Below, one piece after another: positions 10,352 to 40,664 of a stretch of 64,000 nt of DNA; positions within the stretch are counted from its first letter, which is position 1; each line of letters starts with the position of its first letter. Both the position numbers and the translations under genes were made by a program. The stretch spans positions 1 through 64,000 of the forward strand of contig JAKMXF010000005.1 of assembly GCA_024704765.1 (NCBI GenBank), written 5' to 3'. The notes below the pieces were generated by a model. It ran no database searches. It was not told where the DNA came from and saw only the letters and a program-made list of their open reading frames with translations. Source of the stretch: Oopsacas minuta. Taxonomy: Eukaryota; Animalia; Porifera.

Positions 10352-11989
10352 GTTCATCATAATTGGATTAACCAACTTATTCTAGATGGTGAAAATTTAC
10401 AGAAAGATGGAAACCTACATTCTGAAGCTATAAATATTTCTTCTTCATCCATTAAATCAAGAGTCACCGACTTGGATGGCCAATTATTTTCTGCGAAGGA
10501 AAAATATGATAATTCTAAAGCTTACATGGAATATTCTCATCGTATTGATTTGGTCGAATCGTGGATCAGTCTCAGAGAATTAGAAATTCAATCATCAGAC
10601 ATTGGGGATGGGAATGTAATTTCTTATATTGAAAGTCTCATTAGGAAGCACGATACTTTAGAAAATACTTTACAAGTGTTTCAACATGATGGTATAGATC
10701 CACTAACACATGATAAAATTATCTTGAACAATCATGGAAGATTCCATGTCGCAAAAGTACATTTAAAATTAGAAGACATTGATAAACGATGGAACTTTCT
10801 TAGGAAGAATACTGAAGACCGAAAAAGTCGACTTTTACGTTCGTTAGAACTTAGTATAAAGATAGACAATTTGTTCTTGTCTTTTGCTAAAAAAGCATCT
10901 GCATTTTATTCATGGTTTGAAAGTGCAGAAGAAGACTTAATGGAAACTGTTGTATGTAGTTCGATTGAAGAGACAAATCAATTACGAAATCATGATATTC
11001 ATTTCATCGGTACATTGTCCTGGGCTCAGGCTGAACTAAAACAGCTCCTTGCGCTAGACCGACAAATTCAAAGTTTCACAACTTTGCCTAATCCCTATAC
11101 ATGGTATACTCATGATTCTCTACAAGAATCTTGGAATTCTTTACAATCAATTATTCAAAAACGACAATCTGCTTTAGACAAGGAATGTATGAGGCAAGAA
11201 AGAAATGATAAGTTAAAAAGATCGTTTGCGGATAAGGCCAATCTATTTCATTTATGGTTATTTAACACAAGGAGGAGCATGGTTGAAAATACAGGTCAGC
11301 TTCATGAACAACTTGAACTCTTACAGTTAAAGTTTGAAAATATCTCTGAAAAGCAGAATGAGTTATCAGTTCTTGAAAGACTTTCTTGCGAACTCCAGGA
11401 TGAGATGATTTTAGATAATCCTTACACGCAACATACCTCTGTTGGCCTCTCACAACAATGGGATCAACTATCTCAGTTAGGAAGAAGAATGATCTACAAT
11501 TTACAACAACAAATATTATCGAAAAATATGACTGGTGTTTCTGAAGAAGATATGAAAGACTTTCAAACTTTGTTTAATGTATATGATGAAGACCGAAGTG
11601 GTAAGCTAGAGGAGAAAGAATTTAAATCTTGTTTGATATCTCTTGGATATTCCCTTCAGTTTCTAGAGAAAGAACAAAAGGATTCAGAATATGAAAACAT
11701 ATTAGATCAAGTTGATCCAAAGCGTCTTGGAAATATTACACTAGAGGACTTTATGTCATTTCATATCAGTAGAAGAACTGAGAAAGTCAAATCTCGTGAA
11801 GAGTTGGAAGATGCTTTCAGAGCAATCACTACAGATGAAAAATCAACGTTTATTACCAAAGATGAATTGAACCGAGCTCTTGGAACTGAATTACAAGAAT
11901 TTTGCCTCCAATATATGAATAAACATACAAGTTCCAGTTCAGCTTGTCTTGATTATATAACCTTTACCCGATCACTTTTTATGTCCTAA
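10352..11989 (+). CDS. SPTAN1: Alpha-spectrin, last coding exon (C-terminal spectrin repeats plus EF-hands)
   Basis: Acceptor ttttttctag|GTT at 10351/10352, in frame with the 505-aa ORF. Motifs FLSFAKKASAFYSWFESAEEDL, NPYTWYT, ILDNPYTQHTSVGLSQQWDQL, DEDRSGKLEEKEFKSCL and LDYITFTRSLF* match the alpha-II spectrin C-terminus as I recall it. Confidence 0.95.
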   Translation, partial: VHHNWINQLILDGENLQKDGNLHSEAINISSSSIKSRVTDLDGQLFSAKEKYDNSKAYMEYSHRIDLVESWISLRELEIQSSDIGDGNVISYIESLIRKHDTLENTLQVFQHDGIDPLTHDKIILNNHGRFHVAKVHLKLEDIDKRWNFLRKNTEDRKSRLLRSLELSIKIDNLFLSFAKKASAFYSWFESAEEDLMETVVCSSIEETNQLRNHDIHFIGTLSWAQAELKQLLALDRQIQSFTTLPNPYTWYTHDSLQESWNSLQSIIQKRQSALDKECMRQERNDKLKRSFADKANLFHLWLFNTRRSMVENTGQLHEQLELLQLKFENISEKQNELSVLERLSCELQDEMILDNPYTQHTSVGLSQQWDQLSQLGRRMIYNLQQQILSKNMTGVSEEDMKDFQTLFNVYDEDRSGKLEEKEFKSCLISLGYSLQFLEKEQKDSEYENILDQVDPKRLGNITLEDFMSFHISRRTEKVKSREELEDAFRAITTDEKSTFITKDELNRALGTELQEFCLQYMNKHTSSSSACLDYITFTRSLFMS

Positions 11990-12317
11990 TTCTATTTTGA
12001 ATATATAAATTATATCAAATATTAACTATTTTCTTAAATATCATTATTTCTTACTGTCTAATTTAAAATTTTTTTAAATTAAGTCTTTCTATTTCCGGAG
12101 TAGTAATATTTTCATAGAACTAATTGTATATCTGCTTGCTGTTCAATTTCTTGATTTCCACAAAATATTGTCCCAAGACTAGATTTGTTTCCCATGTAAA
12201 TTCAAATTCACATAATTTCTCCCGATATTCTCCAGATTACCGAACCTTTTTGAATCACAAGTGATACATTTCCATGTAGAATATTGTTAACGCGACAATA
12301 TGTCTACCTGTTCACCT

Positions 12318-12550
12318 GGGGCCTTATTAACTAAAATTCTAAGAATTATTCTTAACTTAATTCTAAGTGTATTTCTAAGAATATTTCTAAGAATTCATGA
12401 AATATTCTTAGTTTTCGTTAAGAATTCTTAACTTGGCTATACTTAACGGATTCTAAGAATAATTCTTAGAATTACGCAATTCTAAGAAAAATTCTTAGAA
12501 TAATTCCTAGATTAAGCAATTCTAAGAAAAATTCTTAGAATTGGGTAATT
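12318..12550. repeat. Array of TTCTAAGAA/TTCTTAGAA units in both orientations after a GGGGCCTTATT terminus (probable MITE end)
   Basis: More than 10 copies of AATTCTAAGAA or its reverse complement, including the repeated palindrome-like AATTCTAAGAAAAATTCTTAGAAT. Confidence 0.6.
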
Positions 12551-12737
12551 CTACTTGATTGATTCTTGCTATTGATTAAGAAAATTTATGCCAATTCATT
12601 CGACTACAATCGCTTTTTGAGAAGATATGCGCATAGTATACAATAAATTGCCCCACCCAATAGAAAAGGATATTCATTGCATTTCTCATTTGTGTACTAT
12701 TGTATAAACTCATGGCCTCGCTTTTTGTTCTTTTGGN

Positions 12738-12959
12738 CCAGGTCACCATGCTTCAGGCCCTAATTGCAAACCTAAAAACGGCATGGAAGACGATTTCACC
12801 GAACTTACTTCGAAACCTGGTGAATGGGATGCCTAATCAAATGAAATTAGTTTTAGATTGAGGTGGTAATTATATTGGTAAATAATTAGATATTGTGACC
12901 TTGAAATATTTTATGTGAGCCACCATAATGCAACCGGCCAAGATTTTTGTTAGACCCTG
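12738..12959 (+). mobile_element. 3' end of a Tc1-like element, starting at the N junction
   Basis: LKTAWKTISPNLLRNLVNGMP..M.LVLD*GGNYI is the Tc1 C-terminus. The element ends TTTTGTTAGACCCTG|TA. Confidence 0.75.
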
Positions 12960-13109
12960 TAGTTGGCTTTACTTGTTAATAAGGTCAACATTGACAGAAA
13001 CAAGTTTAATGTAGTCTGGAAATAACATATATATGCAATATCAATTAATATAACCGGGATACACTATATTGCATCTGTTCTCCGAGATTTTATTATAGAA
13101 TCAATAAAC

Positions 13110-13340
13110 CTCACCTGGTCTCGAGTTTAGCTGATTGCTAATGATTGGCCTGATAACAAGAGATTTTCTGACTTTACTTTTCAGGAGCTGGCATTTCTCA
13201 CAAAGTTGTAAATAGGTACAAATATCTTCTTTCGTAATGTTTGCATAACATCAGATATTTTATGTTCCATGAGTATTTTACCGCTATGTCCATTTGATAG
13301 ATGAGCTGTATATAATATTTACTCAATTAATTCACCAATT
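13110..13340 (-). pseudogene. Ginger2/KRBA2-SCAND3-like integrase fragment
   Basis: AHLSNGHSG...ITKEDICTYLQLCEKCQLLKSKVRKSLVIRPIISNQLNSR (H-H-C-C zinc-binding region), frameshifted. Same family as 49676-50460. Confidence 0.65.
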
Positions 13341-14455
13341 GTTCCTGGGATCCTCGTTTCTTAAGATTTAATTAATACGCCATCAACTCGAATTTCTAAA
13401 ATTTCATATCTCTTCATGATTCTATCATCCTTTGGAGTCTTTGAGCTGCTTTTATTTTGATGCTACTGCAACCTTTCTATTCTCTCTAATGTTGCTTGAT
13501 ATTCATATTTAGGTAAGAAACAGTTTTCCTGCTTTACTCTTCATGCCTTCTGCTATTTTACTCATTAAAACTCCCTAGTTTCATTTTATAATATCATATG
13601 AATTTGAAATGTGTGCTGTAATCTGTGGGAAATATCGTTATTTAGTGTTCGACGTATGCGATACAGTTTAAGCAATTTGCATTCAGCATCAAAATGTACT
13701 TCAAAGAATAATGGAATCTTCTTAGTTTCACTTTTACAACGGAATTCGCGTATGACTACTGCTTTTGCGCTAGAGTCGACATCTCTGATATTACCTTGGA
13801 CAATATGATATTGTCCAGCGAAGCATCATTATGTATAGTGTCTCTGGACATTATTCTATTTTTCAATGAGAGCACCAGTATGCATATTTCCTGAAACTGA
13901 AAGACCCACTGGCTGATTTTAGCATACAGTGGCTCTTGCTCGGATAAGTTCGAGCCTGGGAGAAAGATTCACACCTAAGACGAAATTATGACCTAATCTT
14001 TTTGGAATTTCAAAAATCGCATGATTGACCACTCCACGGTTAATAACATGGTAAAAGTTTGATATTTCTATCGCAGGTACCCTAAATGTGCTAATTGTTC
14101 TAACGTTATGATTTTCACCCGTCGCGTTGCGACCAAAACAACTAGGAATTGTTGCTGTTTGATACTTAAACAAACTTGAGGCACTCAGCTGTGGTACAGT
14201 ACAAATAGTTTTAGAGGATTCGTATACATTTTTAGATTATACAACATTTAATGCTTCATCATCATTTCACGCACTGCGAAATGGACTTAAACAATGCCAT
14301 AAAGCCATTGCTGTCTATGCATTGCGTCATGAGTCTACTTTTGCAAATTAGACACACTAGCCCTATTCTCTTATATGTATATCTGGTTTCATCTGATATT
14401 TTGATTGTGTTATGCCATTTAGATGTATTTTGGAATTATTCAATTTTTTTAATAG

Positions 14456-14987
14456 ATTTGACGAACTTTATAATTTGTTTGGTCATCGCAAATCGAAGTT
14501 GATAAAAGACTTGAATATATTAAGATACCTACGATCTCTTGAACAAGAAGAGTCATGGCTGCGTGATAAAAGGCTATTAACTGCTGTTGAAGATTTTGGG
14601 AAAGATCTAATTGGAGTCCAAAGATTAGAGAAGAAGCACCAAAGATTTGAACTGGAGCTTGTATCACATGAAAATACAATCCACAGGTTGGTATCTCAAT
14701 GTAATACCTTGGACATTTGTGAAAAGAGTGATGAAAATATATCTATTATTCAAGAAAAGTGCAGAGATGTGAATTTATCATTAATCGAATTGAAGTCTAA
14801 CGCTATTACTCGAACTCGTTTATTAGATGAGTCTGAAAGATATCAACAATTATCCGCTAATTTTCAAGAAGAGGACACTTGGTTGATAGAAAATTTCAAT
14901 GCAATATTAATAGAAGAAAATGTGGAGAGTTTAGAACTTTTACAAGATAGTTTAAGCCAATTTGAAACATTTAGCTCTGATTTCCAA
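14456..14987 (+). CDS. SPTAN1: Alpha-spectrin internal exon (penultimate coding exon)
   Basis: Acceptor tttttttaatag|A (an alternative in-phase acceptor exists at 14422) and donor CAA|gtgagt. EESWLRDKRLL...EDFGKDLIGVQRLEKKHQRFELEL...YQQLSANFQEEDTWL...FETFSSDFQ ends in phase 0 and joins 10352 (VHHNWINQ), matching FETDFT|VHKDRVND. Confidence 0.92.
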
Positions 14988-15494
14988 GTGAGTATGTATT
15001 CATGTTTCCTTGATTAATTGGTTACACAGGTCAACAAGGTTCCATTTTTCTTTTCGTCATAAATGAAAAATAATTACCGGAACCAAAAATCATATTTAAA
15101 AAATATCCAAAGATTAGATATATTTTTAATCAAATATTTTGTTATTTAATATTTCAAATTATCATAAAAATTATTAATAGTTACTCGATTTTGTTTTACT
15201 TATTCTGTAAATTAGCTATTAGCTACCCAGATTTGATGAAATAGGTTTAATTTAATGGATTTAAAAACACGGCATTTAGCCAATCTCGTATTCAAGTAAA
15301 GGCATCCTAAAAATTCGCTACTCTATAATAAATGGGTTAGCCCATAGTCTACTAAATATAATATCTAACAGTATAAATACTAGGGCTGTAGTGTTAGTTG
15401 AAAACATTTATATTGATGGTTTCTTTACCGTAAATATTTTTTGCCTGAATTTATGTATTTCATATTTGTAGAACTTCAAATTCACGCCTATAAA

Positions 15495-16136
15495 TGCTAA
15501 AGATTTTCAGAAATCGTCAAAATATGTGTCTAGTAGATAAGCATTTATTTAGCAAAATATTTCATTCTTCGATGCCTCGTAGAACGTTAAATATTGCATT
15601 TATCAACTGAATGTGAATAAATGAAATGATCTATATATACCTTTATCCAAAATGTCAGAAATTTGTTGTCCAAAAGTTGGCGCGTTGTTGAGTTACAATG
15701 GATGACAAAGTTACGTGAATATTCAATTATGACTCGAAAATCATTATTATTATGATAAAATCAGAATTGTAAATTTTTACTATTTACCCGACTTCTCATA
15801 CCCTTGTAATTCATTTTGATATGAAATACGTAATTGAGTATAGCGGAATCTTTCCATATATGGGTGTCGTCACATTAGTGCGAATATCACATCAATTTCT
15901 ATTACAAGGGTGTGGGAAGTCGGGTAAATAGTAAAAATTTACTTTTCTGATTTTACCATAAATTCCTCATCCATGGTAACTCCCCACTATCCAATTTTTG
16001 GGCGACAATTTTTGATCTTTTGTATAAAAGTATCTATAAATAATTTCATTTATTCACTTTGAGTTGATAAATGATATATTTGCTAAATATATGTTTACTA
16101 GACACATATTTTGACACATTCCTGAATACTTTAGCA
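15495..16136. repeat. ~640-bp fold-back (palindromic) element
   Basis: The left arm (TGCTAAAG...GTCAAAATATGTGTCTAGTA...TTTACCCGACTTCTCATACCCTTGTAAT) is the imperfect reverse complement of the right arm (ATTACAAGGGTGTGGGAAGTCGGGTAAA...TACTAGACACATATTTTGAC...CTTTAGCA). The spacer is ~90 bp. Confidence 0.85.
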
Positions 16137-17942
16137 CGTATTTGTTAAAATTTAATATCATACTAAAATCTAATACATTTAATGGAGCAATAATGCATTT
16201 TTGTGCAATATAGGAACTATTCTATAACCACTTTCAGCTAATACTGATACTTGGTGTCAAAGTTACTGTTAGACCTTATATTAATATGCTATGGTTAGCC
16301 ATTAATGAGTATTTTGCAGCTGCTTTAGTCGTTCCAAGTCTACTCCTCACTTTGGAATCAACGAACCCGAATGTTGAGAAAACTGCATCTACTTCTGCAG
16401 TTGATCTAATAGCGCCTAGTACTAATTATTTAAAGTCATTTGGAAATTACAATTCCCAGAGATCTAATAGTGGAAAAACATATTAAATATACTGAAATCG
16501 TGTTATTTCGTCAATTTGATTGCGCTGCCTAAAACACAAAACCAGATAGCAAAATGTAACATTAGCTAAATACTTGGAGAAATAATTATTTAATGGCTTG
16601 TATACTCCAATTTATAATGATCTCCAAGGGTACAAATTATCCGATATTAATTAGAGCATTATAAAATCCCGTAATTTGAAAATTCACTGAAATAAACCCT
16701 CCGGAATCAAAGACAAAGAATCCGATTATTGCATGTAGGAATTCGAATAAACAATTTAACACTGACTTGAGGGACAAAAATCCCGATGCGACAAAAACCC
16801 GTCTCAGAATAAGTCGATTCAGCTGTATATCACTTTACTTCAGGATTTTCATTCAAACCACAATGGTTTTATTTATCTAATAAAAGAATAATTATTACTC
16901 CTTTAATGTTTGCGAATTGAATCTTTTGACGATAAATAATCAATGGGATCTATTGGGACTACCAAGCCTACTATCCATAATTTCCATCAGCCAGACTAGA
17001 TATTGGTACCATCTCGGCAGAGTTGTGGAATGCAATACAGTATTATATACTATTATATCTAAGTTGTTTAATATGTCTTCTATCGAAAAAGTAATATTTT
17101 TAATACTTATTATGGGGTATACACATATTAATCACAACTAAGTATTATATTAAATCATATCTAAGTACGCATGTCAATTATTTCTCTCTGTATTATTTGG
17201 ATTTGATTGGGTTTGATTTGATTTGTATGGATTTGAATGAATATCGATCAAATCCACAACTCTGCATCTAAGGGCAGTAAAAGTTTAGTGGTCCTACAAT
17301 ATTTGTAGGATCTATTATATTTCCGATTGGCTAACTTTCTAATGATCGGATGGAATTCCGTCCGATCACTAGGAAGTTAAAATTCTTAAAATTCTTTACA
17401 ATTATTTCACTTCAATGTTATAGTCTAATCAAGTTTCTATACGGGTATTAGTAATCATCGTTGAACTTCCTCAAATGGTGGACACATGAGAATTTTTGCC
17501 GAATTATTATGCCTTGACAAACGCAAGTTGTGACATATTTCATTTTCAGTATGTGTCTAACACATCGGGTTACCCCTCTTGCGATTCTGCTCGGTCGTCG
17601 AACTCCAGCTGGGTACTTTAAACCCATTTATCATTTAATAGTATTTTTATCAAAGGGTATTTCGTCCGAACATAGGAAATTAGGTCAAGAATAATGCCAG
17701 TAACATTAAAAGATTCTATTCTTACAAATCTATCATTTATTTTGGAACTCTAGGGGTATATACTAATTATATTTTGCCCAAAATCGACATTAGTATTTGT
17801 CCACCGAGGTGGTCCCTTTTTGTCATAATTTGAGCTCTGGCTCATGGGCTAATGGGGAAGTATAATCATACAAGAGGTGATAAATCACGCTAACCTGCCA
17901 GTCTGCAAAGATATCTTAAACATTAACTAGAGATATGTGTTA

Positions 17943-19243
17943 CAGGGTGGCTTTTAAGTCCTGACCCATTATATATTTTGTTGTTCACATTGATAGACTA
18001 TTCTTACATGGATTTACTAATCGATATTTCAAAACACATATTGGAACTAATTATATTTGATTGAATTATTCAATGTGGCCACCTTTCTTTGTGATTACTG
18101 CTCGTAGACGCCCTGGCACTGCCTCTACTGCGGCGCGAAGGGTTTCTTCTGAGATTCTAGCCCATTCACGAAGTAGATCCTTCTTTAAAGACGCAATATT
18201 AGCATGAGTCTTGCGCATGCATTTTCTCCAATATCGCCCTTATGGAGAAATCCATGGGATTTAGATCGGGAGTAGACGGTGGCCATTCTTCTTTAGTGAT
18301 AAAATCGGGAACATTTTATAAAAGCTAGGTCTGAGTGATACGAGCTGTATGGGCTGGAGCCCCATCTTGTTGAAACAAGAATCGATTCTTGTTAAACATG
18401 CTAGCACCCAGGTCTTTCACTACAGATTCTAAAATACGATCCTTGTATTCTGTAAAATTGATTTTACACTCTGGGGGACAAATATCAGTGGTGTCCGTCC
18501 AAAACCGGAGACCCCTCCCCAAATCATCACTGAAAGTGGCTTTGGACTCTCCGAACATAGCGGAGTTCTTCATTTATAGTGAAAGAAGTAGAAGATAAGA
18601 TCCTGTCGTTTTGAGAGTTGCTGGCCTCCTCAATTGTGAATGACTTTTCATCTGAATACAGAACATTATGATAGCCATGTTCTGCGAGCCGACTAAGAAG
18701 TTTTTTGCTACGAAGTAATCGTTTTTGTCGAATCGCAGTTGGGAGATAGTGTACCTTTCTTCGTTTATAAGAAGATAGACCCAGGGAACTTTTCACATCT
18801 TATGGACTGATGTACGCGATATTTTGAGTTCAGATGACATTTTTCTCATTAATCGGCGTAGATTTCGCCGAATTCTGTCTCTGATTATTTTCTTCATCCT
18901 GGTTGTGGTTACAGTAATTGGACGTCCACTTCTACTTTTGTCTTTGACACTAATAGTCTCAAGATAGCGTTAGATAGTACTATAGACAAATTTCCTCCGC
19001 TCTTTCGGGATATTCAATGATCTCATAATGTCACATTGACGCTTCCCATTGACAAATAATTCAATTATAGCAGATCGCTGTCTTTCCATCTGTGCAGTGA
19101 AGGGATCGTGTAGAAATATCACTAAGTAATAATTATGCTAGACTACATACATATGCAACATATATAAATATCATAACCTAAGAAAATTTATTATGCTTGT
19201 TGTAAAACTGCAAATATAGGGGTCAGAACTTAAAGCCACCCTG
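17943..19243 (-). mobile_element. Full-length Tc1/mariner maT (DD37D) element with pseudogenised transposase (~18066-19089)
   Basis: TA|CAGGGTGGCTTTTAAGTCCTGACC ... GGTCAGAACTTAAAGCCACCCTG|TA, 1301 bp. Motifs YSDEK, QQDGAPAH-x37-PDLNPMD (counted), SGRP. In-frame stops and a frameshift. Confidence 0.9.
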
Positions 19244-19443
19244 TAAATAAAAATTAGCAATCTGAACATTGCCACCTTAGATGCTACCAAATCATGAGGT
19301 TTGGGGTCTGGGGTCATGAACCATAAGATCTCACAATTCCTTTAGGATTTGAACTAGTGATGCACGTGTACGCCTAAGTATTTGCATGGAGTATCAATTA
19401 TTCAGAAACGGTTCATTTTCGGCCAATAAATTTATGCCATATA

Positions 19444-19666: not shown

Positions 19667-19749
19667 TATATAGAACGCAATTTTCAACCAATATATTTAA
19701 TATACTAATGATATTTCCGGAATGTGACTAATTGTTTGTCAAGTAAGCA

Positions 19750-20741: not shown

Positions 20742-21062
20742 CTTTTTGCAGAGGAAACTCCGTCAGGTTCAGGATATGTTCCAACTTTTAAAAACTTTAC
20801 AATTTCTTCATAAAATACTTCCATCTTTATTGTTACTTGAAAATTATTTACAATTTATATGCGAATTCGAGTAAGCTATCTTGGTCACAAATGTGTCAAG
20901 TCATTATTACGTCAATACTACAAATAAACCGCATAATGATACCTACATATTCTGTATATAGTTTCTCCTTCTGTTACCGTGCCTCAATATTCTACAGTAG
21001 ATATTCATCCATGGTCTATGTATGCAGTGCCTCAATATTCTACGTGCCTCACTAATCTATGC
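20742..21062. mobile_element. Right half of a TIR element whose left half is at 34824-35086
   Basis: 20950-21062 (...GTGCCTCAATATTCTACAGTAGATATTCATCCATGG...CACTAATCTATGC) is the reverse complement of 34824-34942. The segment begins at N20741. Confidence 0.75.
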
Positions 21063-22228
21063 AACAGACCTAAGAGCGTGTCGGTCGATTTTTGAAAAGT
21101 TTGCTAATGATTATTGTTTGAGACTATGTCAGCAACTGAGAGTGGTTCGAGACGGCAAAGTTTGTTTTACATGTTATTGAAAAGGAGCCCAATGAAAAGG
21201 AAAACAATATTCCTGTCCAGGGAAAATATATAGCTCGGACTCTACCCATTTGGCTACCTATATATTCAATGAGGTATTGAGTCATGATAGGCACATATTA
21301 GGGCTCTAAATGCAAATTGAAATCGAAAAAGGGTAAAGTCAATGTGTTTAGGGCACATTTGTGTTTGGAATGTTGCCAAATTCATGACCTTGGTGACCGA
21401 AAACATCATAGGAAGAATAGTGATGTGGCCACGCAAACGCACAGAAATTTGAAAATATTGTATATGAAATGCTCTTCAATTTTTACTCTTTATAATATAG
21501 TATCGTCAAGGATCATACCCTTGGAGCACTCAGCGGTCCTAGATAATCCCTTATCTCTTTAAATCCTTTTCGAGTTGCCCAGAAAGGTATTCAATGAATT
21601 AACTCTTTGCTTAAACAAACTCCTGCCTGACCATTTTGCCTATGTATGACCTGTTTGGGCGAACAACATCTTTAGTGACTTGACATATTCCTTGATTCAA
21701 GGGTAGGCATCCACTTTCCAAGTGTGGATATTCGCCCTTCCTTTGATCCCCTTAGTTTCACCCCAATCATTTGAATATATCTGTTTCATCACCTTTTTTC
21801 TAAATTCGGCTATTTAGAAGGTTACAAAAATTATGTTGTAATCTAAGAATTGGTTATTATCACGATTTGGATTTAATGTTGAAATTGAGCTCTACGTTCA
21901 AAGAATATGCGAAGTCATAACTTTATAGAAATCAAGTGCGAGATTTCACTCGGTTGAACCCCATATTATAATCGTACAGTGCACTCCCGTTCAACCAAGT
22001 TAGTAATTATTACTTCCGTTAAAGTTAAATGGTTTTTTACTCCATCAAGATTCTAATCGCTGTTGCACCTTACGTAAGTCATCATAACATTAGTATCATA
22101 TTTACTTAATCGTTTGTGTATAATCCCGGAATAATTAGTTCGTAAGCTGATTGTTATCTAGGAATCACAATAGATAACTCGTACAACACATTCTTAGCCA
22201 GAAATGTTGGTTTGAATATATAGTAAAC

Positions 22229-24829: not shown

Positions 24830-25227
24830 TCACTTGTGGAAAAATTGCAAATCAATTCTACTTCACTTTTTACTTCTCATCCGATTTCATATGATTTCCT
24901 TTTTGAAAAGCTTACTGAAATGAATGCATCTTTTGACTTGTTTTCTCATAATATTTCTAATAGAGCACTTCAGTTGCGAGCTTGTAATTATTTTCAAAGA
25001 TTTTTAACTGAACAGAGAGACCTATTATTTTGGATTACGTCTCTTCAGGGACAGATTCATATAGGTGAATTATCTCTTGAGATTAGCGGAGCCGAAGCTT
25101 TATTGATGAGGATTGAAGAGCTGAAAATTGAAATTTATGCTCGGGAAGATAACTATAATTCAGTTTATAACTTCGGATTAGAATTAGTTCAGGATGTGCA
25201 TTTTTCAAAACAAGAAATATCTACGAG
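24830..25227 (+). CDS. SPTAN1: Alpha-spectrin internal exon
   Basis: Acceptor attttatag|TCA and donor ACGAG|gtatca (phase 2). SLVEKLQINSTSLFTSHP...FQRFLTEQRDLLFWI...GAEALL.R.EE.K.EI.AR aligns with alpha-II DKVNSLGETAERLIQSHP...LQRFLSDFRDLMSWI...GAEALLERHQEHRTEIDAR. Confidence 0.9.
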
Positions 25228-28766: not shown

Positions 28767-29310
28767 ACTGGATGAGTTAAAATCAAATTGGTTGGAACTT
28801 AATGATGCTTACCATTCTCAAGAATCTAAAGTATCTCAATTACTAGCTCTTTTAATATATTTTCGTGATGTAGAGCAATGCGAAAATTGGATATCATTAA
28901 AGAATACCTTTATTTCAAACATTGAATCCGATGTTTCATTAGATGGTGTTCATCTTATCTTGCGAAACGTTAATGAACTATCTGACAGTCTGCTTATACA
29001 AGATGATAAAGTTTCAGGATTACAGGAATCAGCAACGACATTAATCCAATCCCGTCATTATGCTTCTGCTGTAATAGCTGAAAAACGAGTTGATATTCTT
29101 CAAAAATGGAAAGGTTTGAAAGCGTTAGTCTCAGATAAACGTGAAGATGTTGTTTATATGTATTCTTTGCATCAATTCCTCCTGGACGCTGCTGATATTG
29201 AGGGTTGGATATCAGAGAAATGTGAAACTTGTGTATCTGATTCGTTTAAAACATCAACTTATACTTCAATCGAGCACTTTTGTAACAGGCAGGAAACATC
29301 TAAGGCAGAG
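28767..29310 (+). CDS. SPTAN1: Alpha-spectrin internal exon (directly follows 24830-25227)
   Basis: Acceptor tatatag|A completes codon AG|A from 25227; donor GAG|gtatga. FRDVEQCENW...QDDKVSGLQESATTLIQSRHYA...LHQFLLDAADIEGWISEK matches FHRDCEQAENW...QEEKIAALQ...LQQFSRDVDEIEAWISEK. Confidence 0.9.
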
Positions 29311-31859
29311 GTATGAAAAACTTTATTGCATTGGAACCGCTTTCTTTGGACAGCTCGAGAGTAATGCTGTTCCGATTATAGATGTATGATGTATATACTT
29401 GTAGTTCTCGTCGTCCGTATTTTGACTATTCTCATAGAATATTTTTTGTCTTATTTATATGTACGCAACTCCTTCCTGCGACAAAGCAGTGGCTTCGTTA
29501 CGCACATAAGCAGTTCGATAGAGAAATAATCACAATTGTTGAATTACTAATTGACCTTTTTACTGTGCCGACTATGCTTTAGTACAATGATGCCCAACTG
29601 TCGGACCACGGTCCAGATCCGGAACTTTCTTCAATCTAGTCCGGACCGCAAGCTTGGGATTGGATTCATCCATACTTCTTTCAAAATTCTGATTATATAC
29701 CAAATAAATTCTATGTATTTACTCTTCGAGATATTTTTGCCATATTTATATACTATTTCATTTAGATAGAGACTTAACTTACACTGATTTATTTCATTAT
29801 TTATTATTCCAAGTAATACTTATTGACTTGTATGCGCTTTTAGCATTAGATTCATAGTAGGAAATTTTGTAGTATATTTCAGATTCATATAAGTGATTAA
29901 TTCAGGGAATTTTATGTTGTGGACTGCTGATCTTTTTTGTATAAATATATGGACCTTGACTGAAATCCTATGGGCATCTATGCTTTAGTATATGTTTGAG
30001 TATTGATTTTAGTGATTATTTTGTATTTTTGTTGCTTTTTTCCGTATCCGCTCTACAGCCTACACCGATGAAAATTAAGGGCTGAATGGGTTCAGACTTT
30101 TGTATATTTTACCTCTGTATACGATTTTCGATCTAATAGATTTTGCCACTTTTTGTGCCACGTTAAAATTAGTGTATAGGGTTTATGGATTGTTAAATAC
30201 TAGGAGCAAAATCATAGAAGCAGGTTATTAACAATAGAGGATAATACTAATGTTATTTATTTAATCTTATTACTACATATTGGATTGGCTTGATTCAATA
30301 ATTTAGAATAAGCGTAACCAGTGGCGTAGACAAGGTGACTTTAGCATTATTGTTAGACAATCACAACATTCGTTTATGGACATTCAAGGGATTAGAATTA
30401 CATTAATAAATATTCATATCCTATATATTTACTACACAATGGATGTAATGTTGGTTAAATTGTTGGGGAGGTAAATAGTATTGAATTCACATGAAATCAT
30501 TTTGGTGAATATGTCGCCACCTCACTTTTATTGCTGCCTACGCCTCTGGTCGTCAGCCACATGAAACTTAAAACAGGAATAACTCAATAACGATAGTAGT
30601 TCCGACTATACTTACAATTGAAGAAGTGTAGTAGGTGTTAGGATGGACACACTGACCACACTAATCACGACGTTACCAAAGTTGGAGTGATGATTACAAA
30701 GCAAATTTTGAAAAACCTTTACAATATTTGCATATTTTTCTCAGTTAATATGAGGTCATGGATTAGTAGAACTCTTATAACTCCATTTTAATATGAGAGT
30801 GCAATAGATTTTCATAGCCTTCTAGTATTTCCATGATTGTTGATTTTGGGACAAGGATGCACCTATTGACCCAACTGAAGTTAAGTAATTGTCACCTATT
30901 TGTTAGCATCATCATTACCAGGCATAATAACGTATTCTAGGGTTTATTTTTCGTATTCCACCGGAATTTTGTCTTAATATGTTGGAATAGTAATAAATTG
31001 GATCTTAATACAGACTATGATCAATAAACGATACTTAACTTGAAACATATTGACATTAAACACAAATCAATCCATGGTAGGTAAGAGCAACTCCTTATCT
31101 AGTGCCAACTTTGAGATTCAACCTCACCTATCTATATTATTAAATCGCAATAAATTTGTACATACAGGCTGACTTTTTGCATTCAAGGGTATTTTGGAAC
31201 TAGCCTTGACAATTTTCAAGTCTTGAACGAAAATTCATGCCTATGACCATAGGCGTCGATCGTGACGGGGCCGGCCCCGCCGGCCCCCTCAGTATTTGCA
31301 ACTGGTGGGGCCTAACCCACCTGGCCCCCGTCAGGTTTTGGTCTATCAGACTTCGGAAGTTTGAATTATATTTGTCAGGGTTGATTCATTTAACACGGAA
31401 GCAATTAATTATTAATACAGTTTTCACGCTTTTCTATAACACCGATTATTTTGAAATTCAGAATCCTGACCCAAGTTCCATGACTAGAGGTGTTCACTAT
31501 TTGGAGGTTTAACTGTGCTTACATTTTCCACGGAAGCCATTAATTATATATTTTTTCATTTAGCAAGGAAGCCACTAGCCCTAGTCAAAGTAATTACACT
31601 CCCTGGCCAAAAGTACTTGAACACTTTTGAACCACTTGTGGTACAAGAGGACATAGTAAAATGCTTGGACCACTTACCATGGTTCTTGAATTATAGAGAG
31701 TATATTGTTACTACTACTAATGGATCATTTAAATTTATAATTTCATAATTGCTTCTTATAGTTTATGCTTTTGTTAAGTTTTGTTGGCTAAATTTAAATG
31801 TTTAAGATTTATTATACTAGACGCACTATGTATGATTATGAATTTCGATGTAATGAACC

Positions 31860-32460
31860 CCGAAACCTCGTGAACCTGGTCCCGTTAGCTTTATTCCGAA
31901 ATCTGAAAAGTTCGACGCCTATGCCTATGACGAAATTATGACTTCATTACCACTTTTGGGATTTACGAAAAATCACATTATTCACCACTACTCAGCTAAT
32001 ATTTATCCTATATTATTGAAAGTTGAATCACAGGTACCCCATAATATGCCAAACGTTCTGACATCATCACTTTGCATAATTGCAAACTCACTATGAATTA
32101 TTCTGTCATCGTGACTCTACTAAATTTGAAAATTTTCAATTTTCTAGATGTTCTGGCATTTCTTAATTCATGATGTTCTAAGGCCGAGATTTCTAGCCAC
32201 AAGCCACGCAATAACTCCAACATTACCACAGAAGGCCATTACATTAAATTTAGACCATGGATGATAAAAATTTATATTTCCATAAAAATTCACCTCGAGC
32301 CACGTGGTGCTCAGTAGATTTCGTCGCGTAGCGACACCAAGTCTCTGATGAATGTAGCTGTTATATGTTAAAACCACGGACAATGATTAAGAATACTTCC
32401 GCCCGTCCTGCAGCTTCCTAGCAAGCGAAGTGCGCTTATATATGTTTATTATAAGTGCTT
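31860..32460. repeat. Copy of a dispersed repeat family (also ~13900-14170, 46007-46136 and 51473-52070)
   Basis: Shared blocks ACGAAATTATGAC, CACAGGTACC, ACCACA(G/A)AAGGCCAT, CTCGAG(C/G)CACGT and TCCGCCCGT...TAGCAAGCGAAG. 46007-46136 is a near-exact inverse of 51473-51602. Confidence 0.6.
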
Positions 32461-33099
32461 TTCTTTCAGAAATTGCCTGCGTAAGTTAGCTGTAAGTTTG
32501 CCATCAAGGTCGCCCTAACGTTTCCATTCATCTTACGAATATTCCACACACAAATTGTACATTGAAACGAAATTTTAACCTCCTTTACATGAGAGTAACT
32601 ACCATTACTTTGTATCTTGCTTATACGTGAAGTGAGTAATAATGACATAGCAAATTTTGAGATTTCTAAACAAAATTGAATGTTTTGTAACCACTTCACA
32701 ATAAATTGTGAGCGTAGCTTTCAACAACTTGAAAATTTCTATCTCTTCTGACATCTAAGTCTATTCAGTAATATTTTTAATGTGGCAGTATTAATTAGGA
32801 GAACTATAAAATGTTAAATTCAACCAAGTACATGTAATATAATTCCTAGTTCCAATTTGAACAAATAAAATTACTAGACTAAGCTGTCGGCACGCCAACT
32901 CACTACATCAATATATTTCCAGTTTTGATGATTTTATAGGCTAGTTGCCAGAGGGTGATAATTGAGTCTTTCAAGGAAGTTCTTATGATTGTTTCTTGAT
33001 CTCTAGCATATTCTGATCCAGTATTCACGGGGTGCCTTGGTGGAAACTTGATAATTATGAATATTTACATAAACCTACGGCGTATATCCCGTTTATTTG

Positions 33100-33480
33100 C
33101 GAACTGCAATTTTTGTTTGAGACTATATCAAAGCTAGGACAAGTGCCATTCATATTGGTAAGGAGCTAATAGAATAAGAAAAAACTTGCCCTGTTGGGAT
33201 ACAGGGAAATTTTATTATAGCTGGACTCTGCCCTTTTGGATAATTCATATATAATGACGTTATTATGTCTTATTGGCCACTTAATAGGGCTTTAATTCCA
33301 CTAGAGTCGAAAGAGAGGTTACTCGATGTGTTTAGGGCACATTTTGTTTTTGGAATGTTGCCACATTCCTGAACCTTGCGATGGAGAAACTTTTCCCAAA
33401 TACTATCATGTGACCACTCAAACAAACAGGAATTTTACACTGATTACAAAAATCAATATGAAAATTTTGTTAGAAATATA
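33100..33480 (+). repeat. Diverged copy of the repeat at ~21110-21460
   Basis: Collinear blocks TTGTTTGAGACTAT, TATAGCT(C)GGACTCT and GATGTGTTTAGGGCACATTT...TTTGGAATGTTGCCA. Confidence 0.65.
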
Positions 33481-34823
33481 TATGGAATTTTTATTGGATT
33501 ATGCCTATTTTAGCTCCAAAATGTTTTATATGTGTTAAATTATTGATTTTATTCTGACTGTGAATCTAATTTATTTTTCATTTTGATTACGTGATCACAA
33601 ATTTACGAATTAGGGCTTTAGGTGAATGAAAACTGAGCGTAGTAGCGTGCTCCGAATAACCTGTAGAACTCTGTGAAAGAGGGGTATGATATGTTAAGGA
33701 GGTAGATTTGAGGTTGACCCAATAGAAAACTCTTGAAACAAATCTGAAGTCAGTGAATAAATATTACTAGGATAACAATTGTTCCTAAAATCAAGCAAAT
33801 TAATCTGAAAATGAACAAATAACTCCATTGCTCGGAAATAGACATTGGTACAATATGTAGGGGTATGTAATTTTGTATCTTTATCAGAGATATCAAATAC
33901 ACAAATGACAAAAGTCCATCATTTCTAATTGTACGTATTTATTGTTACAACACTCATACGAATCCGGATGAATTGTTTGTTCAGGTTTGTTAATGTTGAA
34001 AATTTGATCAAATAGACTATAGATGACGTAAAATTACTTGAATATCACAAGAAAAGACGTGAAGTTTCCCTGTGGACAAGGGGTGGACGTTTATGGCTAT
34101 ATGTCAACTTGTACAGAAATCTGTGGTAGATATGTGCAGTGCTTTGAGCCTGAACAATTTGGTCATTGGATATCTTCGGGATATAGACATGTAGAAGAAT
34201 AACACAAATTTGGATTCTTATTATACTCTCCGTTGATTCAATAAAATAACAGCGCTCGACAAAATTGAAATTCTGTGGTGCCTTGCTTGGCCACCAACTC
34301 GCATAGTTATAAAATTATGAAAATCTTTGGTGGGTTAAGGTAAAATACTAGCAGCTATTGTCACCAAACCACAGGATTTGTAGAGTATTGTAAAATATAT
34401 TCATTTGTAATATAATAATGATATATTATAATACTAGATGAGTTCCATCGCTGGGTCCTTCTCTTCTGGAAAGGTTGACCTATTTGTCGAGATCAATAAT
34501 TTGAACCTCTATATATTTACACCTAGCGTGACAAGTAGTTTGGAGCATAATATTCTCTTGCTTACCTACAGGTCCCAATAAGCATTCTACTATGGATAAA
34601 CGAATTCGATTACCAGGACTTTCGATAATACAGTGCTATCTTGATTCGACTCATGAATTCTTGATTCTGATCAAAATATTCTTGAGCCTTAATAGTACAA
34701 TCGGTAGAGGGCTAATACTGAGTTGTCGTCGAAGGAACGTTATATGATGGTTTCTTGATCTCAAACAATCCCCCGTGGCCAGAGCTTGCAAACCTAGCAA
34801 TTGTATTATTTAAATAGACCTGT

Positions 34824-35086
34824 GCATAGATTAGTGAGGCACGTAGAATATTGAGGCACTGTATACATAGACCATGGATGAATATCTACTGTAGAATATT
34901 GAGGCACGGTAACAGAGGGAGAAACCATATACAGAATATGTAGTTGTCATCATGCTGTTTTCTTTTATTAATAGTATTTACGTATTTCAATCATGACTTG
35001 AAAATATACTTGTTTTTGACAACACATACGTGTACAGTGAAACCTCATTAATTATTATTACAAACGCGGTCAATACGAATCTCCTG
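34824..35086. mobile_element. Left half of the TIR element whose right half is at 20742-21062
   Basis: GCATAGATTAGTGAGGCACGTAGAATATTGAGGCAC... runs to N35087. AGACCT flanks both outer ends (34816-34821 and 21066-21071). Confidence 0.75.
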
Positions 35087-35087
35087 N

Positions 35088-35451
35088 CCTGCTATTTTAA
35101 AACACGCAAGAAGGATAGCTAGTTTATTTGGAAGCACTTACACTTGCGAGGCATTTTTCTCTAAAATGAAATATATCAAGAACAAATATAGAACTAATTT
35201 GACTGATGACCACCTCCTAGACGTTCTTCGTATTTCATCGACTGATATGAAACCTAATATAGATGGCATCTTAATACAACAACAAAAACAGTAACAACCT
35301 TCACATTAATATTTTGCTCTGATAAATTACTCATAATAATACAGTACTATATTAATATATAGAATACATGATCCTTAACTTTTAATGCTGCTCGCCAATC
35401 TAATACGAAACTAATATTTGGCTCATAGAAGAAAAAGGTTGAAGACCCCTG
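35088..35451 (+). mobile_element. 3' end of a hAT (Buster/SPIN-like) element
   Basis: RIASLFGSTYTCEAFFSKMKYIKNKYRTNLTDDHL (hAT dimerisation domain). TIR AGGTTGAAGACCCCTG followed by GTGAAGCG. Confidence 0.9.
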
Positions 35452-35690
35452 GTGAAGCGAATAACTCCAACATCCAAGGCTTCTCAGCCTTCGTAGGGTG
35501 GCTGAATCAAGTGAAGAGCCGACATGGAATTCATGGGAGGCTTACTAGTGAGGCAACATCTGTCAAATGGTAGTAGTGACCATTGGATGGAATTGATTCC
35601 AAAGGTGATAAAGGATACAACCCGAAAGATCTATGTGATTGTGATTAGACTGGTACCTACTACAACAGTCTACTTCAAAGTACCTGGTGT
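35452..35690 (+). pseudogene. Tigger/pogo transposase fragment (continuation of 41545-41853)
   Basis: FSAFVGWLNQVKSRHGI...EATSV...WMELIPKVIKGYNPKDLCDCD*TGTYY matches the consensus ASxGWLxxFKxRHGI...GEA...GYxPxDIFNxDETGL. Confidence 0.75.
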
Positions 35691-35759
35691 TGAGTATATT
35701 TTATGTATTAAACTTGTATATTTACCATTTTGAACAATTTTGGTGGTTTAATCTTTGAT

Positions 35760-36528
35760 ATATCATCTTCATATCAATAACCTGAGTTGCTCCACAAACT
35801 CTCTAGCTATTAAAGAATCAATGAGGTATATTCAATCCTTTATTTATGAAAAATTGGGGAATGAGTGCAAAAGTACCTATCTTTTGATTATAGATTCATT
35901 CCCTGGGCAAGTATCACACCAAGCACAAAATATTGGCCCACTCAGAGGAGTTATTCGAGAGTCCAATGCTGGATTCGGCTTAAAGGATTTCGTGAAGAAG
36001 CTACAGAATCTTGCAACAAACTTTTCCAAAATATCGGAAAATTTGGCAAGGAAATATTGCTTCGAGACTAATCTTATGGATCTTTTCGTGAGATTATCCT
36101 CCCAGAGTGATGTATTTCTGTAACTTTCGGCGAATTTTAACTTGTAAAATATGTGGTCAATCTGGTCTCTCATCGAGATCCAAACGCTGCAAATCAGATA
36201 ATATCTAACGTCCATCTAATATAGATGCTTTATTCGCTTCCTTAACCTTTTCCTCATAGTTGCTATACTTGTATATAGATAAATAGTGTTGTAGTCTTGT
36301 GTACACATGATTTTAGTTTATTGTTGAATCAGTTATTACCAACCCATATTTTTGAATAAATTTTATACACACCAATGACGTAATATCAAGAAAAATAGAC
36401 TTTTTAGAAGAAAATTAATACTCCCAATCAACTCGTAGGTATCGATAATCTATACGCAAATTATATATTATACAACGATAGGGCTCATAATGCCTATTCC
36501 TTACCAAATGCCGTTTGAAACCACTGTG
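35760..36528 (+). mobile_element. 3' fragment of a Transib (RAG1-core-like) transposon with right TIR ending CACTGTG
   Basis: Reading across frameshifts: FPWASITPS-HKILAHSEELIRESNAGFGLKGFREEATESCNKLF-KYRENLARKYCFETNLMDLFVRLSSQSDVFL* (ends 36123). The terminus at 36528 reads CACAGTGG on the minus strand. Confidence 0.75.
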
Positions 36529-38694
36529 GAACAAATTTTTTGAAAACATATTTTTTACGTACAAATATCTTCGATAATTTGGCGATCGAAATGGTTAATC
36601 GGGATTTCTTATCCCGATTAACTAATATTTTGAAATTTTTTAACGCTCATATTCTGGACTTCTATCCATATAACCTGAATATTTCTATAATTATAATTGT
36701 TAATTTGGATTTCAATCCCATTATTGCGATTCTAGTTATCGTATCAACAATTTTTATTGAATCGAGATATAAATTCAGGATCACTTGTATGTTTTTTGTT
36801 TCTCTAATAAGGAATTTACATTGTATATGCAACCTTAACTTTTAAATGTATACTAAACGACTCATCTTTGCTAGACCCTATTGCCATGATATTGTAGTGG
36901 TGATTAAGATATTTCTGGTCACGAGATCACGAAAAGATAATTTTGAATGCTTAAATAATCATGATTAGTTAATCGGGACAATCGGTTAACCGAGACAAAA
37001 CTGTGACTCCTCAGCTGTCCTGATTACCGACTTCTACTTTAACAATTATTTAATTTTTTTGATTTATGAAACGCCCTATCTTGGGACAACACCAGGCAAT
37101 TTACAATTCTGGAAACAGTACAGAGGCCAGTACAAGAAAATAGAATACATCAGATCAAATATATACAACAAAATTATTATAAATATAGATAATTTATATA
37201 TAAAACTGATTTCAAGAGATAGGTCTTCAAACGTATTTTGAAACTTTGAACATTTGTAGCATTCTTAATATATAATGGAAGCTTTTCCCATTCCCTAGGA
37301 GGCTTGACAATTGACCGATTATGACCGTTTGAAGTTGCTAATCACCAAAATTATTTATGTCCCCAACACTAATCGATCATAACTCGGTCAGGCAATGTTA
37401 AATAGAAACGCGTGACGAATTACGCCCTCTACCATTGGTTTCCCGATCAAAATCTTTTTGGCTAATAATAGTGCTCACACTGACCATGGTTTGGTATTTT
37501 CCAAAACTTGACTTCAAAAATTTCGAAATTGGGCCTTGAGACCAAAAATGTATGAATAATGCATAATTTAGCCGAGTTTGTGATACATTTGCAAATTGGA
37601 TGTATTTGCTACGCTTTTAGGAATTTTTATTATTCGACTAATTTCTATTGGAAAAACATTAGGTAGCCTGAATATTGCACCAATAATTACCTTAAAATAC
37701 TTTTTGACAGGCGCTCCCCCTCTCTATAATTAGCACTACACCTCTGATAGTAATACATCTAAGACTACCCCACTGATGCTAATATATCCATTTGCCAGTA
37801 CACATACTGTCTACTCTATAAACATATTGCATAGTAGCTTGATTAGTGAGTGTACTGTGTAGTCAATAGCCCTATTGCCCAGTTATTTGTTTAGTACGCA
37901 TATTGACTAATCAATTTGGCAATTCGTTTAACTTATTAGCAATATATTTTTCTGGATTATGTAACGGTTTTGAAAGTATTTTCTTTTCAAATGATGTGCA
38001 ATTGTGGCATCTTTTTTTTATGGTAAATACCATAAAAGTTTGTATCCAATAGAATTGTCTCCTCTGGTATCGGTTCAGCTAGAAAGGGATGGTCCCAATC
38101 GTTAGTGATAGACGAGATATAGGTAAATTTGGAAGTATTTATCTTTCGAAGTTTTGGTTGTGTATACGACACGAGAAAAGGAATACTATTACTGACCCAC
38201 CAAAGTACCAATTCAAAACTGGACCTGTAGCGCTCAAAAACCGTAATACCTAGTCAGTACGCGTACTGACTGACTTCCGATTTGACCATAACATATTGGT
38301 GAATAGAAATGCAGTTTAGATATTTTATTAGGAGAGGATATACGTAAGCATTACCTACGTATATTTAGGAGGAATATGAGTGGATGTGAAGACAAGTTAT
38401 TTTAGACTACAAATTTAAAAATCAGTATTAGCACGATTTGCTTACTAATTGACGAACTTTAACTCATTAGGATTCGAAATCTACGTACTATATTTAGCGA
38501 ATATTACTACTATTTAGCAATTTTCTACTATAGGAACTCAATTGTACGAGATGTGAATCCATTTACACCCTCTCTGGATTTCCAAACTGTTGCTATTAAT
38601 TGAATTGTTGTTAGCCGGACGACCTCGAATGGTGTTTACTCAAATTTTTGATCATCCTAATATTATGTTGACCATTTGGACGATCGATGTCCTT

Positions 38695-39007
38695 CAGTGT
38701 TTCTCAACCTTTTTCAAACTGCAGTACATTCTTTTCATCTCTAATTTATCAAAGCACACCTGTCAAGGGTGAATTCAACTTTAGTTCAGCCACGTTGTCA
38801 ATATTGTTCGATTTATATTATATACTATAAGTGAATATTCTTGTTAAATTTCTAGTTTTTCTCTTGGCTAATTAATCTCCAGAACAAATACATGAATGCT
38901 GTATTGCTGTATATGCATATATTTGCACAAGCGATATTAATTTGGTGGCATACTTAAAAGTTCCGCGGCACTTAAGTGTGCCACGTCATATTGGAGAGAA
39001 CCCGCTG
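38695..39007. mobile_element. hAT (Charlie-type) MITE
   Basis: CAGTGTTTCTCAACCTTTTT left end and GGCACTTAAGTGTGCCACG...GAGAACCCGCTG right end. No clean TSD. Confidence 0.6.
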
Positions 39008-39581
39008 CTATACATAATGTATTCCTGAGGTATGGATGAAAAGTTAGTTGCCAAAATAGCTCACAATGTTATGGTACATGTATACTCTAATTTTCATTTG
39101 TTCCGTTAGGTCACTGAGAGTTAGAAGCATGATTTAGTTCCACCGCTTTCATCTGATTTCGCTACCGCACTAATGTTATCATTATTGTCATTCTATTACC
39201 ATATACTCAATGTAATTAAACTCCAAAAATGTGTATAAACTGGCTAGTAGTACAATCGATGTATCCTTTTCATAGTCGCAATGAACAAATTTTCCAGGTG
39301 TACTTCACAAAATGATGTGATAATGATAATGAACCGCCCGCCCGAATGTATCTTCAGGTGGATCTAAAATGGAGCTGATACAAGTTCTCACTATGTGTGG
39401 CCTTTTATTGTGACACATTACTTATATATAGCTAAGCTATAGTAAATTACAATTTTTGTAATACAAAAGTTTATACCCCCATTCGAAATGGTGACTTTTC
39501 TTAATCCGAAAAATGAGCTTTCATCGAAGATACTAGAAAAGCTAATACCAAAAAGCAGAACTATGGTATAGCTGGGCTATA

Positions 39582-39707
39582 CAGGGTGTTAAGAAATTGA
39601 TGTCACCTTTTTGAAATTAAATAGAGCCATAAATTAACTATTTGAATCGTGTTTTAGCTTCCAATTCTTATTCTACGTATTTGAAATAATAGAATTCCTG
39701 TAAATTC
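39582..39707 (+). mobile_element. Left end of the Tc1-like element ending at 23275
   Basis: TA|CAGGGTGTTAAGAAATTGATGTC, cut by N39708. Confidence 0.8.
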
Positions 39708-39708
39708 N

Positions 39709-39855
39709 GTACAAGTAGGACAAATTAGTGATTGAAATGATCCTGATCGAATATCTTGCAAATTCACTGTAGTTTAATATAGATGAGTTAAAATCTCACG
39801 GTGAAAGGCTGTCCCTGGTCTAATAATACTAATGAGTTGCAATCTCACGCAACAG
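39709..39855. repeat. 147-bp arm, inverse of 45859-46005
   Basis: Near-identical reverse complement (one substitution seen). Both arms abut an N at the same base. Confidence 0.9.
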
Positions 39856-40349
39856 TCCTATACCGATTTTAACTCATTCTCTGGACCCCATTCATTGATG
39901 GCAATACAAATTTTTTGATCCTGTGGACATGTATTCCTCCTAGCTTCACTAGTTTTCAATGGATCTCCGGGATTGGAATTCTGCTTAGTGATAACATAAT
40001 CTATATGAATTTGCATGAACATTGTCTGATAGTTTACTTTTCTCTCCATATTCTTTTCTATCAATCTTGATGTAAATTGAAAATGATCTCATGGTTGCCA
40101 ACCTGAGTGAAGAAAATTGCGTTACGGAACAAACATGATTAACTGAACATCGCGGGTCGCAGCAGAATTACGTCGAGATATTACTTATATTGACATTTAG
40201 TTTAAATCTGCTATGACTTAATACACTCTCTTAGTTCTCTTATACTTTCTCCACTGGAGTTACATAGTGTATATTTCTATGACTCGATTTTATTTGATTC
40301 TCAGAGCATGACCTCTATTTTTATTACTATTCCATTTTTTGTACATTAG

Positions 40350-40664
40350 GTATGGTCTTATGAATCACGTATTTTGCAAATTGCTGATCAGAAGGTTTTA
40401 TTGCCTCCTTCTATGGATACTAAAGACTTGGATACTTTATTGATTGAATGGGATCAACTATTAGGTGATATGGAACGACGTAAGCAATCTATTTCTGATA
40501 TATTAAATCTTCAAAAGTCATTTAGCGATATCAATGAGGCTATTTCTTGGATTAATGATATTGATATTTCAGCTACATCAGATAATTTTGGTAAAGATCT
40601 TGCTTCTGTCCAAATGCTATTAAGAGAGCATGAGATGGTTGAAAATACTAAGACAGCTATCCAG
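40350..40664 (+). CDS. SPTAN1: Alpha-spectrin internal exon (most 5' exon visible; splices to 24830)
   Basis: Acceptor gtacattag|GTA and donor CAG|gtgagc, phase 0/0. SYESRI...WDQL...QKSFSDINEAISWI...TSDNFGKDLASVQMLLREH best matches ANESRL...QRFHRDADETKEWI...TDNYGHDLASVQALQRKH, which lies just upstream of the SHP segment encoded at 24830. Confidence 0.88.

Follow-up and report, generated by a model that had tools for sequence, protein, structure and literature searches.

The 64,000-nt window analyzed here, the whole stretch of the Oopsacas minuta contig JAKMXF010000005.1 under study, very probably contains the 3′ half of one ordinary alpha-spectrin gene, whose exon disorder would come from the assembly having written N-joined contigs in reverse order. 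Judging from the sequence, we put the probability of this reading at about 0.96. The gene is a normal, divergent sponge alpha-spectrin; a scrambled or trans-spliced gene is not a real feature of this locus, and its appearance is an assembly error. The first-pass annotation had likewise ascribed the exon order to mis-ordered contigs and not to biology, and this stands: the gene of a relative is colinear, the reversal occurs across N junctions only, and split transposons become canonical once the order is reversed.

Single-N contig joins at positions 12737 (A|B), 20741, 23051, 35087, 39708, 41984 and 46006 split the window into pieces A to H; elsewhere in the assembly, the same kind of junction holds runs of 1, 538, 1128, 1138 and 2303 Ns. 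The alpha-spectrin exons all lie on the + strand. The first of the window's exons in mRNA order is 40350..40664 in piece F (315 nt, phase 0), which matches the Pfam Spectrin profile with E=1.3e-10. Piece D contains the next two, 24830..25227 (398 nt) and 28767..29310, the latter with an AG acceptor, a GT donor after 29310 and a phase 0 end. These two are colinear and cover residues 15-92 and then 91-218 of PDB 3fb2, and the frame of the 25227>28767 join was checked by translating the joined exons. Downstream in the mRNA are 14456..14987 in piece B (532 nt), whose first base finishes a codon opened in a missing exon, and the terminal exon, 10352..11989 in piece A, which ends in a TAA stop. The internal borders of the five exons are all AG|exon|GT, and no exon contains an internal stop. 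The first-pass annotation had described five + strand exons with GT-AG sites; the borders are confirmed, the exons are consecutive parts of one alpha-spectrin, and the peptides given for the joins 40664>24830, 25227>28767 and 14987>10352 are found in the sequence. Neither the window nor the loci retrieved for comparison resembled human DNA.

Membership in the alpha-spectrin family is seen in the domain content. PF00435 spectrin repeats are present in all five window exons as well as in exons on two further scaffolds, C83 and C154. Upstream of its stop, the terminal exon encodes three spectrin repeats, an EF-hand pair and a Ca-insensitive EF-hand, the latter two matched by PF13499 and then PF08726 in 10352-11986. 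This exon is one of only two EFhand_Ca_insen loci genome-wide, and the genome has a single alpha-spectrin C-terminus. Alpha-actinin shares the C-terminal arrangement of an EF-hand pair and a Ca-insensitive EF-hand; over its full length the exon matches SPTA1 with 312 bits, above the 213 bits for alpha-actinin. On C154, positions 3-19 and 19-48 of the SH3_1 profile fall on two consecutive exons; with the putative domain split by an intron, both halves stay under the 22.9-bit cut-off, at 18.4 bits apiece.

We placed the exons on pig SPTA1 (PDB 8iah_8, 2417 aa), of which the five together span residues ~1130-2415; all protein comparisons were made exon by exon and never on a joined coding sequence. 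The 24830, 28767, 14456 and 10352 exons are colinear with SPTA1, with best placements at residues 1246-1368, 1374-1535, from 1690 onward and 1884-2415, the last aligned end to end with E=5e-92. The earlier identification as alpha-spectrin holds, but the alpha-II spectrin named there as its reference is to be replaced by erythroid SPTA1 (a cryo-EM entry), which is the best match of solved structure. The 40350 exon cannot be positioned from SPTA1 alone, as spectrin repeats cross-match: it aligned best with repeat 3 (residues 245-312), which we rejected as a placement, and the colinear site scored just 5.5 bits. In a related species (ENA ERZ25072740), two N-free contigs, ctg126361 and ctg126370, have all the exons colinear on a single strand and in the inferred mRNA order; the contig with the counterparts of the window exons is 51 kb long. 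The relative has a single gene, and the window exons match its successive exons one by one, none of them overlapping or duplicated, at identities of 54% (40350), 48% (24830), 51% (14456) and 66% (10352). In the relative, the next exon upstream of the 24830-type exon is the counterpart of the 40350 exon, and the inferred mRNA order is therefore correct. A second relative (L019) has no upstream exon within 9.7 kb of its terminal-type exon and for that reason is uninformative on order. The order proposed in the first-pass annotation, 40350 > 24830 > 28767 > (missing) > 14456 > 10352, agrees with the SPTA1 placements for the last four exons and with the relative's gene for the 40350 exon, and the exon coordinates confirm that the pieces stand in the DNA in the reverse of this order.

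At the site of the gap between 28767..29310 and 14456..14987, the relative's gene has one extra exon of 365 nt. The donor at 29310 is in phase 0, the acceptor at 14456 leaves 2 nt of its first codon to be supplied, and 365 is 2 mod 3; this phase mismatch fits the intervening exon, which is therefore missing from the assembly and not spliced out. A search of the whole assembly with the relative's 138-aa exon returned only paralogous repeats, as did a very loose tblastn in C5 (the scaffold of the window), C83 and C154.

Within each piece the exons are colinear, and permuted exon order was not found in contiguous DNA. As had been noted, at least one N lies within each backward join, and D, the only piece with two exons, has them in the correct order. 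Reversing the pieces restores the colinearity of the gene together with the canonical structure of repeats split at piece ends. One such repeat has an inverted arm at the start of piece F (39709..39862, +) with a 98% reverse-complement match to its partner at the end of piece G (45852..46005, -). This repeat has at least 40 genome copies, and its pairs on contiguous DNA are arranged as (-)...(+) in 15 of 15 cases, an arrangement that the window copy gains only if G precedes F. Similarly, a multi-copy transposon of ~4.4 kb has its left inverted end near the end of piece D (34823..35001, +), which matches, with 88% reverse-complement identity, the right inverted end near the start of piece C (20896..21063, -). 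All 10 pairs of this transposon on contiguous DNA are (+)...(-) and ~4 kb apart, and the arrangement is regained only if D precedes C. Among the 120 possible pairs of piece ends, 3 match (C_start/D_end, D_start/E_end and F_start/G_end), and all 3 are neighbours under the reversed order. Exact suffix/prefix overlaps among piece ends do not exceed 4 nt, so none proves adjacency. After reordering, the intron from B to A would be ~16 kb long, versus 2.3 kb in the closest relative; the corresponding distance in the second relative likewise exceeds 9.7 kb.

The same reversal is found on other scaffolds. The 5′ half of alpha-spectrin lies on C83 and C154, where it is colinear inside N-delimited pieces while the pieces are exactly reversed: on C83 the - strand exons ascend in coordinate, from 29715 to 32494 to 43536, with an N separating each from the next, and on C154 the exons at 4434 and 18433 are followed by 26169 > 22642, a pair that shares one piece and is colinear there. 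PARP1 on scaffold C17 has its zinc fingers, WGR, regulatory domain and catalytic domain all on the - strand in four N-delimited pieces, each colinear inside and placed in reversed order. PARP-family loci on contiguous DNA (C311 and C22) have the normal order. In all, every N-joined junction tested, across four scaffolds and two unrelated genes, has its pieces in reverse order, and the permutation is not specific to one gene, as PARP1 and two transposon families are reversed likewise. Even after reordering, C5 lacks the 5′ exons, which means that upstream of piece G this scaffold also has a missing part or a wrong join.

Different readings of the locus can be weighed against these observations. 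If the assembled order were correct, the alpha-spectrin gene would be truly scrambled, and its mRNA would have to arise through trans-splicing, back-splicing of a long precursor or a programmed rearrangement of the DNA, for example in somatic nuclei. The five exons, though out of order, do all have open frames, canonical splice sites and phases that fit together, and with one alpha-spectrin C-terminus in the genome the gene is presumably expressed. However, the disorder is confined to N junctions and takes the form of an exact reversal every time; PARP1 on another scaffold and non-coding transposon structures show it too, which a gene-specific mechanism would not bring about, and the relative's gene is plainly colinear. 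We consider a scrambled sponge locus extremely improbable.

The abundance of spectrin repeats, with 45 Pfam matches on several scaffolds, could suggest several partial paralogues, or fragments of pseudogenes, as the source of the exons. This has next to no likelihood, given that the exons carry no internal stop and correspond one to one to consecutive exons in the relative; together with those on C83 and C154 they give one full alpha-spectrin of repeats, a putative split SH3, repeats and EF-hands. A transposon-mediated rearrangement in the sequenced individual, leaving a disrupted allele, fares slightly better but is still very unlikely. Inverted-repeat transposons do lie exactly at several piece ends, but such an event would neither put an N at every breakpoint nor swap both ends of a transposon, and exact reversal at N junctions is seen on at least four scaffolds.

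Under the preferred reading of reversed contig order, each run of joined contigs would have been written in reverse with strands kept, equivalent to flipping every contig in place. The true piece order would then be H-G-F-E-D-C-B-A with strands unchanged, and the exons would run from F (40350) through D (24830, 28767), a gap with the ~365-nt exon, and B (14456) to A (10352 up to the stop codon). A large share of the contig breaks fall inside multi-copy transposons whose interiors were left unassembled. SSPACE marks a join with a single N if the gap it computes is negative. A mate-pair library with the wrong read orientation would set each neighbour on the wrong side, unflipped. The published assembly of this glass sponge used SSPACE for scaffolding, with paired-end and Nextera mate-pair reads (BioProject PRJNA761294; PMC10280926 lists the reads as SRR23032955-61), and we infer that a wrong mate-pair orientation setting in SSPACE may have caused the reversal.

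The alpha-spectrin gene itself is ordinary and offers no biological novelty; the value of the result is in data quality. Genes that cross N junctions, such as alpha-spectrin and PARP1, would be predicted as fragments, scrambled or absent, and the reversal bears on gene-loss claims from the Oopsacas minuta genome, as it does on all synteny analyses. The reversed piece order should be mended by re-scaffolding.

Compared with known alpha-spectrins (SPTA1/SPTAN1 and Drosophila alpha-Spec), the sponge protein has the same tandem 106-residue repeats, putative mid-chain SH3 and C-terminal EF-hands. It differs in being divergent, with a last exon ~40-42% identical to arthropod fragments and 37% identical to demosponge ones, and in the absence of the ~365-nt exon from the Oopsacas minuta assembly. 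Ciliate micronuclear genes, Drosophila mod(mdg4) and the permuted tRNA genes of red algae also have an exon order in DNA that differs from that of the mRNA. However, in those systems the order is backed by contiguous sequence and transcripts, whereas here each break falls on an assembly gap, and the same happens to unrelated genes and to transposons. The likeness to a wrong-orientation scaffolding error lies in contigs that are exactly reversed in order but unchanged in strand, and in single-N or N-run joins at every breakpoint, assembly-wide.

The window (G+C, 35%) is cut by seven single Ns into eight pieces: A (1-12736), B (12738-20740), C (20742-23050), D (23052-35086), E (35088-39707), F (39709-41983), G (41985-46005) and H (46007 onward). 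It is the initial 64 kb of scaffold C5 (151,828 bp) in an assembly of 61,460,524 bases in 365 scaffolds. The five plus-strand alpha-spectrin exons of the first-pass annotation are present as described. Four of these are bordered by AG and GT and have a Pfam spectrin repeat: 40350-40664 in piece F, 24830-25227 and 28767-29310 in piece D, and 14456-14987 in piece B. The terminal exon (10352-11989, piece A) is preceded by AG, ends in TAA and encodes spectrin repeats, an EF-hand pair and a Ca-insensitive EF-hand by Pfam. The Ca-insensitive EF-hand is typical of alpha-spectrin and alpha-actinin, and the genome contains only one other such locus, on scaffold C66; since that is taken to be a putative alpha-actinin, the sole alpha-spectrin C-terminus of the genome is in the window.

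Each exon was searched singly against the sequences of solved structures, and full-length pig erythroid alpha-spectrin (SPTA1; 8iah_8, 2417 aa) was the top target throughout. In the deduced mRNA order, 40350 > 24830 > 28767 > (missing) > 14456 > 10352, four of the five exons rise along SPTA1, at residues 1246-1368, 1374-1535, from 1690, and 1884-2415 (E=5e-92). The search gave no placement on SPTA1 for the 40350 exon because its half-repeat matches many repeats; a relative placed it instead. The exons are part of an ordinary alpha-spectrin gene, a divergent one, and their disorder along C5 is real, lying far outside what chance would give.

Word searching with the terminal exon brought up long contigs in ENA metagenome assemblies that encode unnamed proteins 63-68% identical to it. 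Walking upstream from the terminal exon on one such contig, from a related species (ERZ25072740 ctg126361, 685 kb), we recovered 51,098 bp with zero N, in which every alpha-spectrin exon is on one strand and colinear. The final six are, in sequence, counterparts of the exons at 40350 (54% identity), 24830 (48%) and 28767 (51%), one additional exon of 365 nt, and counterparts of the exon at 14456 (51%) and of the terminal exon (66%). This order, identical on a second contig of the sample, is exactly the one deduced from the window. Upstream of the most 5′ spectrin exon recovered, and no more than 10 kb from it, the relative's contig also encodes a Mutator-type transposase of 819 aa and has a frame of 1185 aa without a Pfam match (L035:763-7057). 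The donor at 29310 is phase 0 and the first base of the 14456 exon completes a codon, requiring a length of 2 modulo 3 between them, which the 365-nt exon fits. Its counterpart was not found anywhere in the assembly; the exon is therefore missing from the assembly rather than spliced out.

Exons further upstream in the relative have their matches on scaffolds C83 (45,960 bp) and C154 (27,045 bp), on the minus strand throughout. The C83 exons follow one another in the mRNA as 29715, 32494, 43536, with coordinates increasing despite the minus strand and an N between each exon. Those on C154 run 4434, 18433, then 26169 and 22642; the latter two share one piece, are colinear and each encode a putative half of an SH3 domain. 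On all three scaffolds, order is correct within pieces and exactly reversed between them. The same is true of PARP1 on the minus strand of C17, where zinc fingers (7080-2815), WGR (11454-11326), regulatory domain (16930-16703) and catalytic domain (20495-18632) are distributed over four pieces; the N runs between them measure 1, 538 and 1 bases, with a further run of 1128 N at the end of the fourth. PARP-family loci on contiguous DNA (C311, C22) have normal order. Of the seven PARP1 domain matches (C17:1-22163), three contain a single in-frame TAG each (ZnF2, PARP_reg and one of the catalytic segments); overhang into an intron or an error may explain it.

Comparison of all 16 piece ends of the window with one another (120 possible pairs, 7 of which adjoin in reversed order) yielded only three matches, all inverted: C_start/D_end (179 nt, 88%), D_start/E_end (34 nt, 94%) and F_start/G_end (154 nt, 98%). 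All three adjoin solely in the order H-G-F-E-D-C-B-A. Both long repeats are termini of transposons present in many copies. Where such pairs lie on contiguous contigs, those of the 154-nt repeat are (-)...(+) in 15/15 cases and those of the 179-nt repeat (+)...(-) in 10/10, about 4 kb apart. Both pairs in the window have the opposite arrangement as assembled, and regain the canonical one only with G before F and D before C, respectively. The swapped ends indicate that contigs stopped within repeated transposons and that adjacent contigs were subsequently misordered.

Several other features were observed in the window. Piece H starts exactly at an arm of a 151-nt inverted repeat (46007-46157/51452-51602, 95%) bounding about 5.6 kb with a Mos1-type HTH open frame (48516-49070), probably a mariner-like element. 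A 669-aa minus-strand frame without a Pfam match (53722-55728) lies between inverted repeats (53466-53613/56133-56279; 117-148 nt, ~92%). In a protein atlas it groups with unnamed proteins from cnidarians and sponges (0.97-0.98) and less strongly with RAG1 RNase-H-like clusters (0.85-0.87); the element (53466-56279) may be a Transib/RAG1-like transposon. Foldback-like self-complementary stretches of 0.2-1 kb lie at 12335-12553, 15589-16081, 26887-27880 and 47890-48500, and contig breaks in the assembly tend to fall at such palindromes and at transposon ends. On the minus strand, a frame of 629 aa (59021-60907) encoding calcineurin-like phosphoesterase and TMEM62 Ig-like domains adjoins a 470-aa frame without a Pfam match (56969-58378); both lie within a single piece and are left intact by the scaffolding error.

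A gene scrambled in the genome itself, as the assembled order would have it, finds no support: the relative's contiguous locus is colinear, and the reversal extends to other scaffolds, to the unrelated PARP1 and to transposons. The first-pass preference for mis-ordered contigs is right, given colinearity within pieces, reversal between pieces on C5, C83, C154 and C17, and transposon arms that become canonical after reversal. A mate-pair library in the wrong orientation makes a scaffolder set each neighbour on the wrong side, unflipped, and in SSPACE output a single N marks a negative gap. For the published assembly, which has 365 scaffolds, a G+C of 36% and a size of about 61 Mb, SPAdes was run on Illumina reads together with corrected PacBio reads; SSPACE then scaffolded the contigs with the whole Illumina set, Nextera mate pairs among them, and Pilon and GapFiller were the finishing steps (PMC10280926). 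If mate pairs were given to the scaffolder in the wrong orientation, each neighbouring contig would be put on the wrong side with its strand kept, exactly the pattern observed, and we infer this to be the cause of the reversed order.

After reordering, the last intron would span about 16 kb, and C5 still lacks the 5′ exons, which sit on C83 and C154; the locus is thus additionally split over three scaffolds. A second spectrin-family gene, probably beta or beta-heavy spectrin, lies on the minus strand of C365 (447607-458144), with about 30 repeats and a 2231-aa open frame. It is nearly intron-free, in contrast to the intron-rich alpha-spectrin of the same genome.
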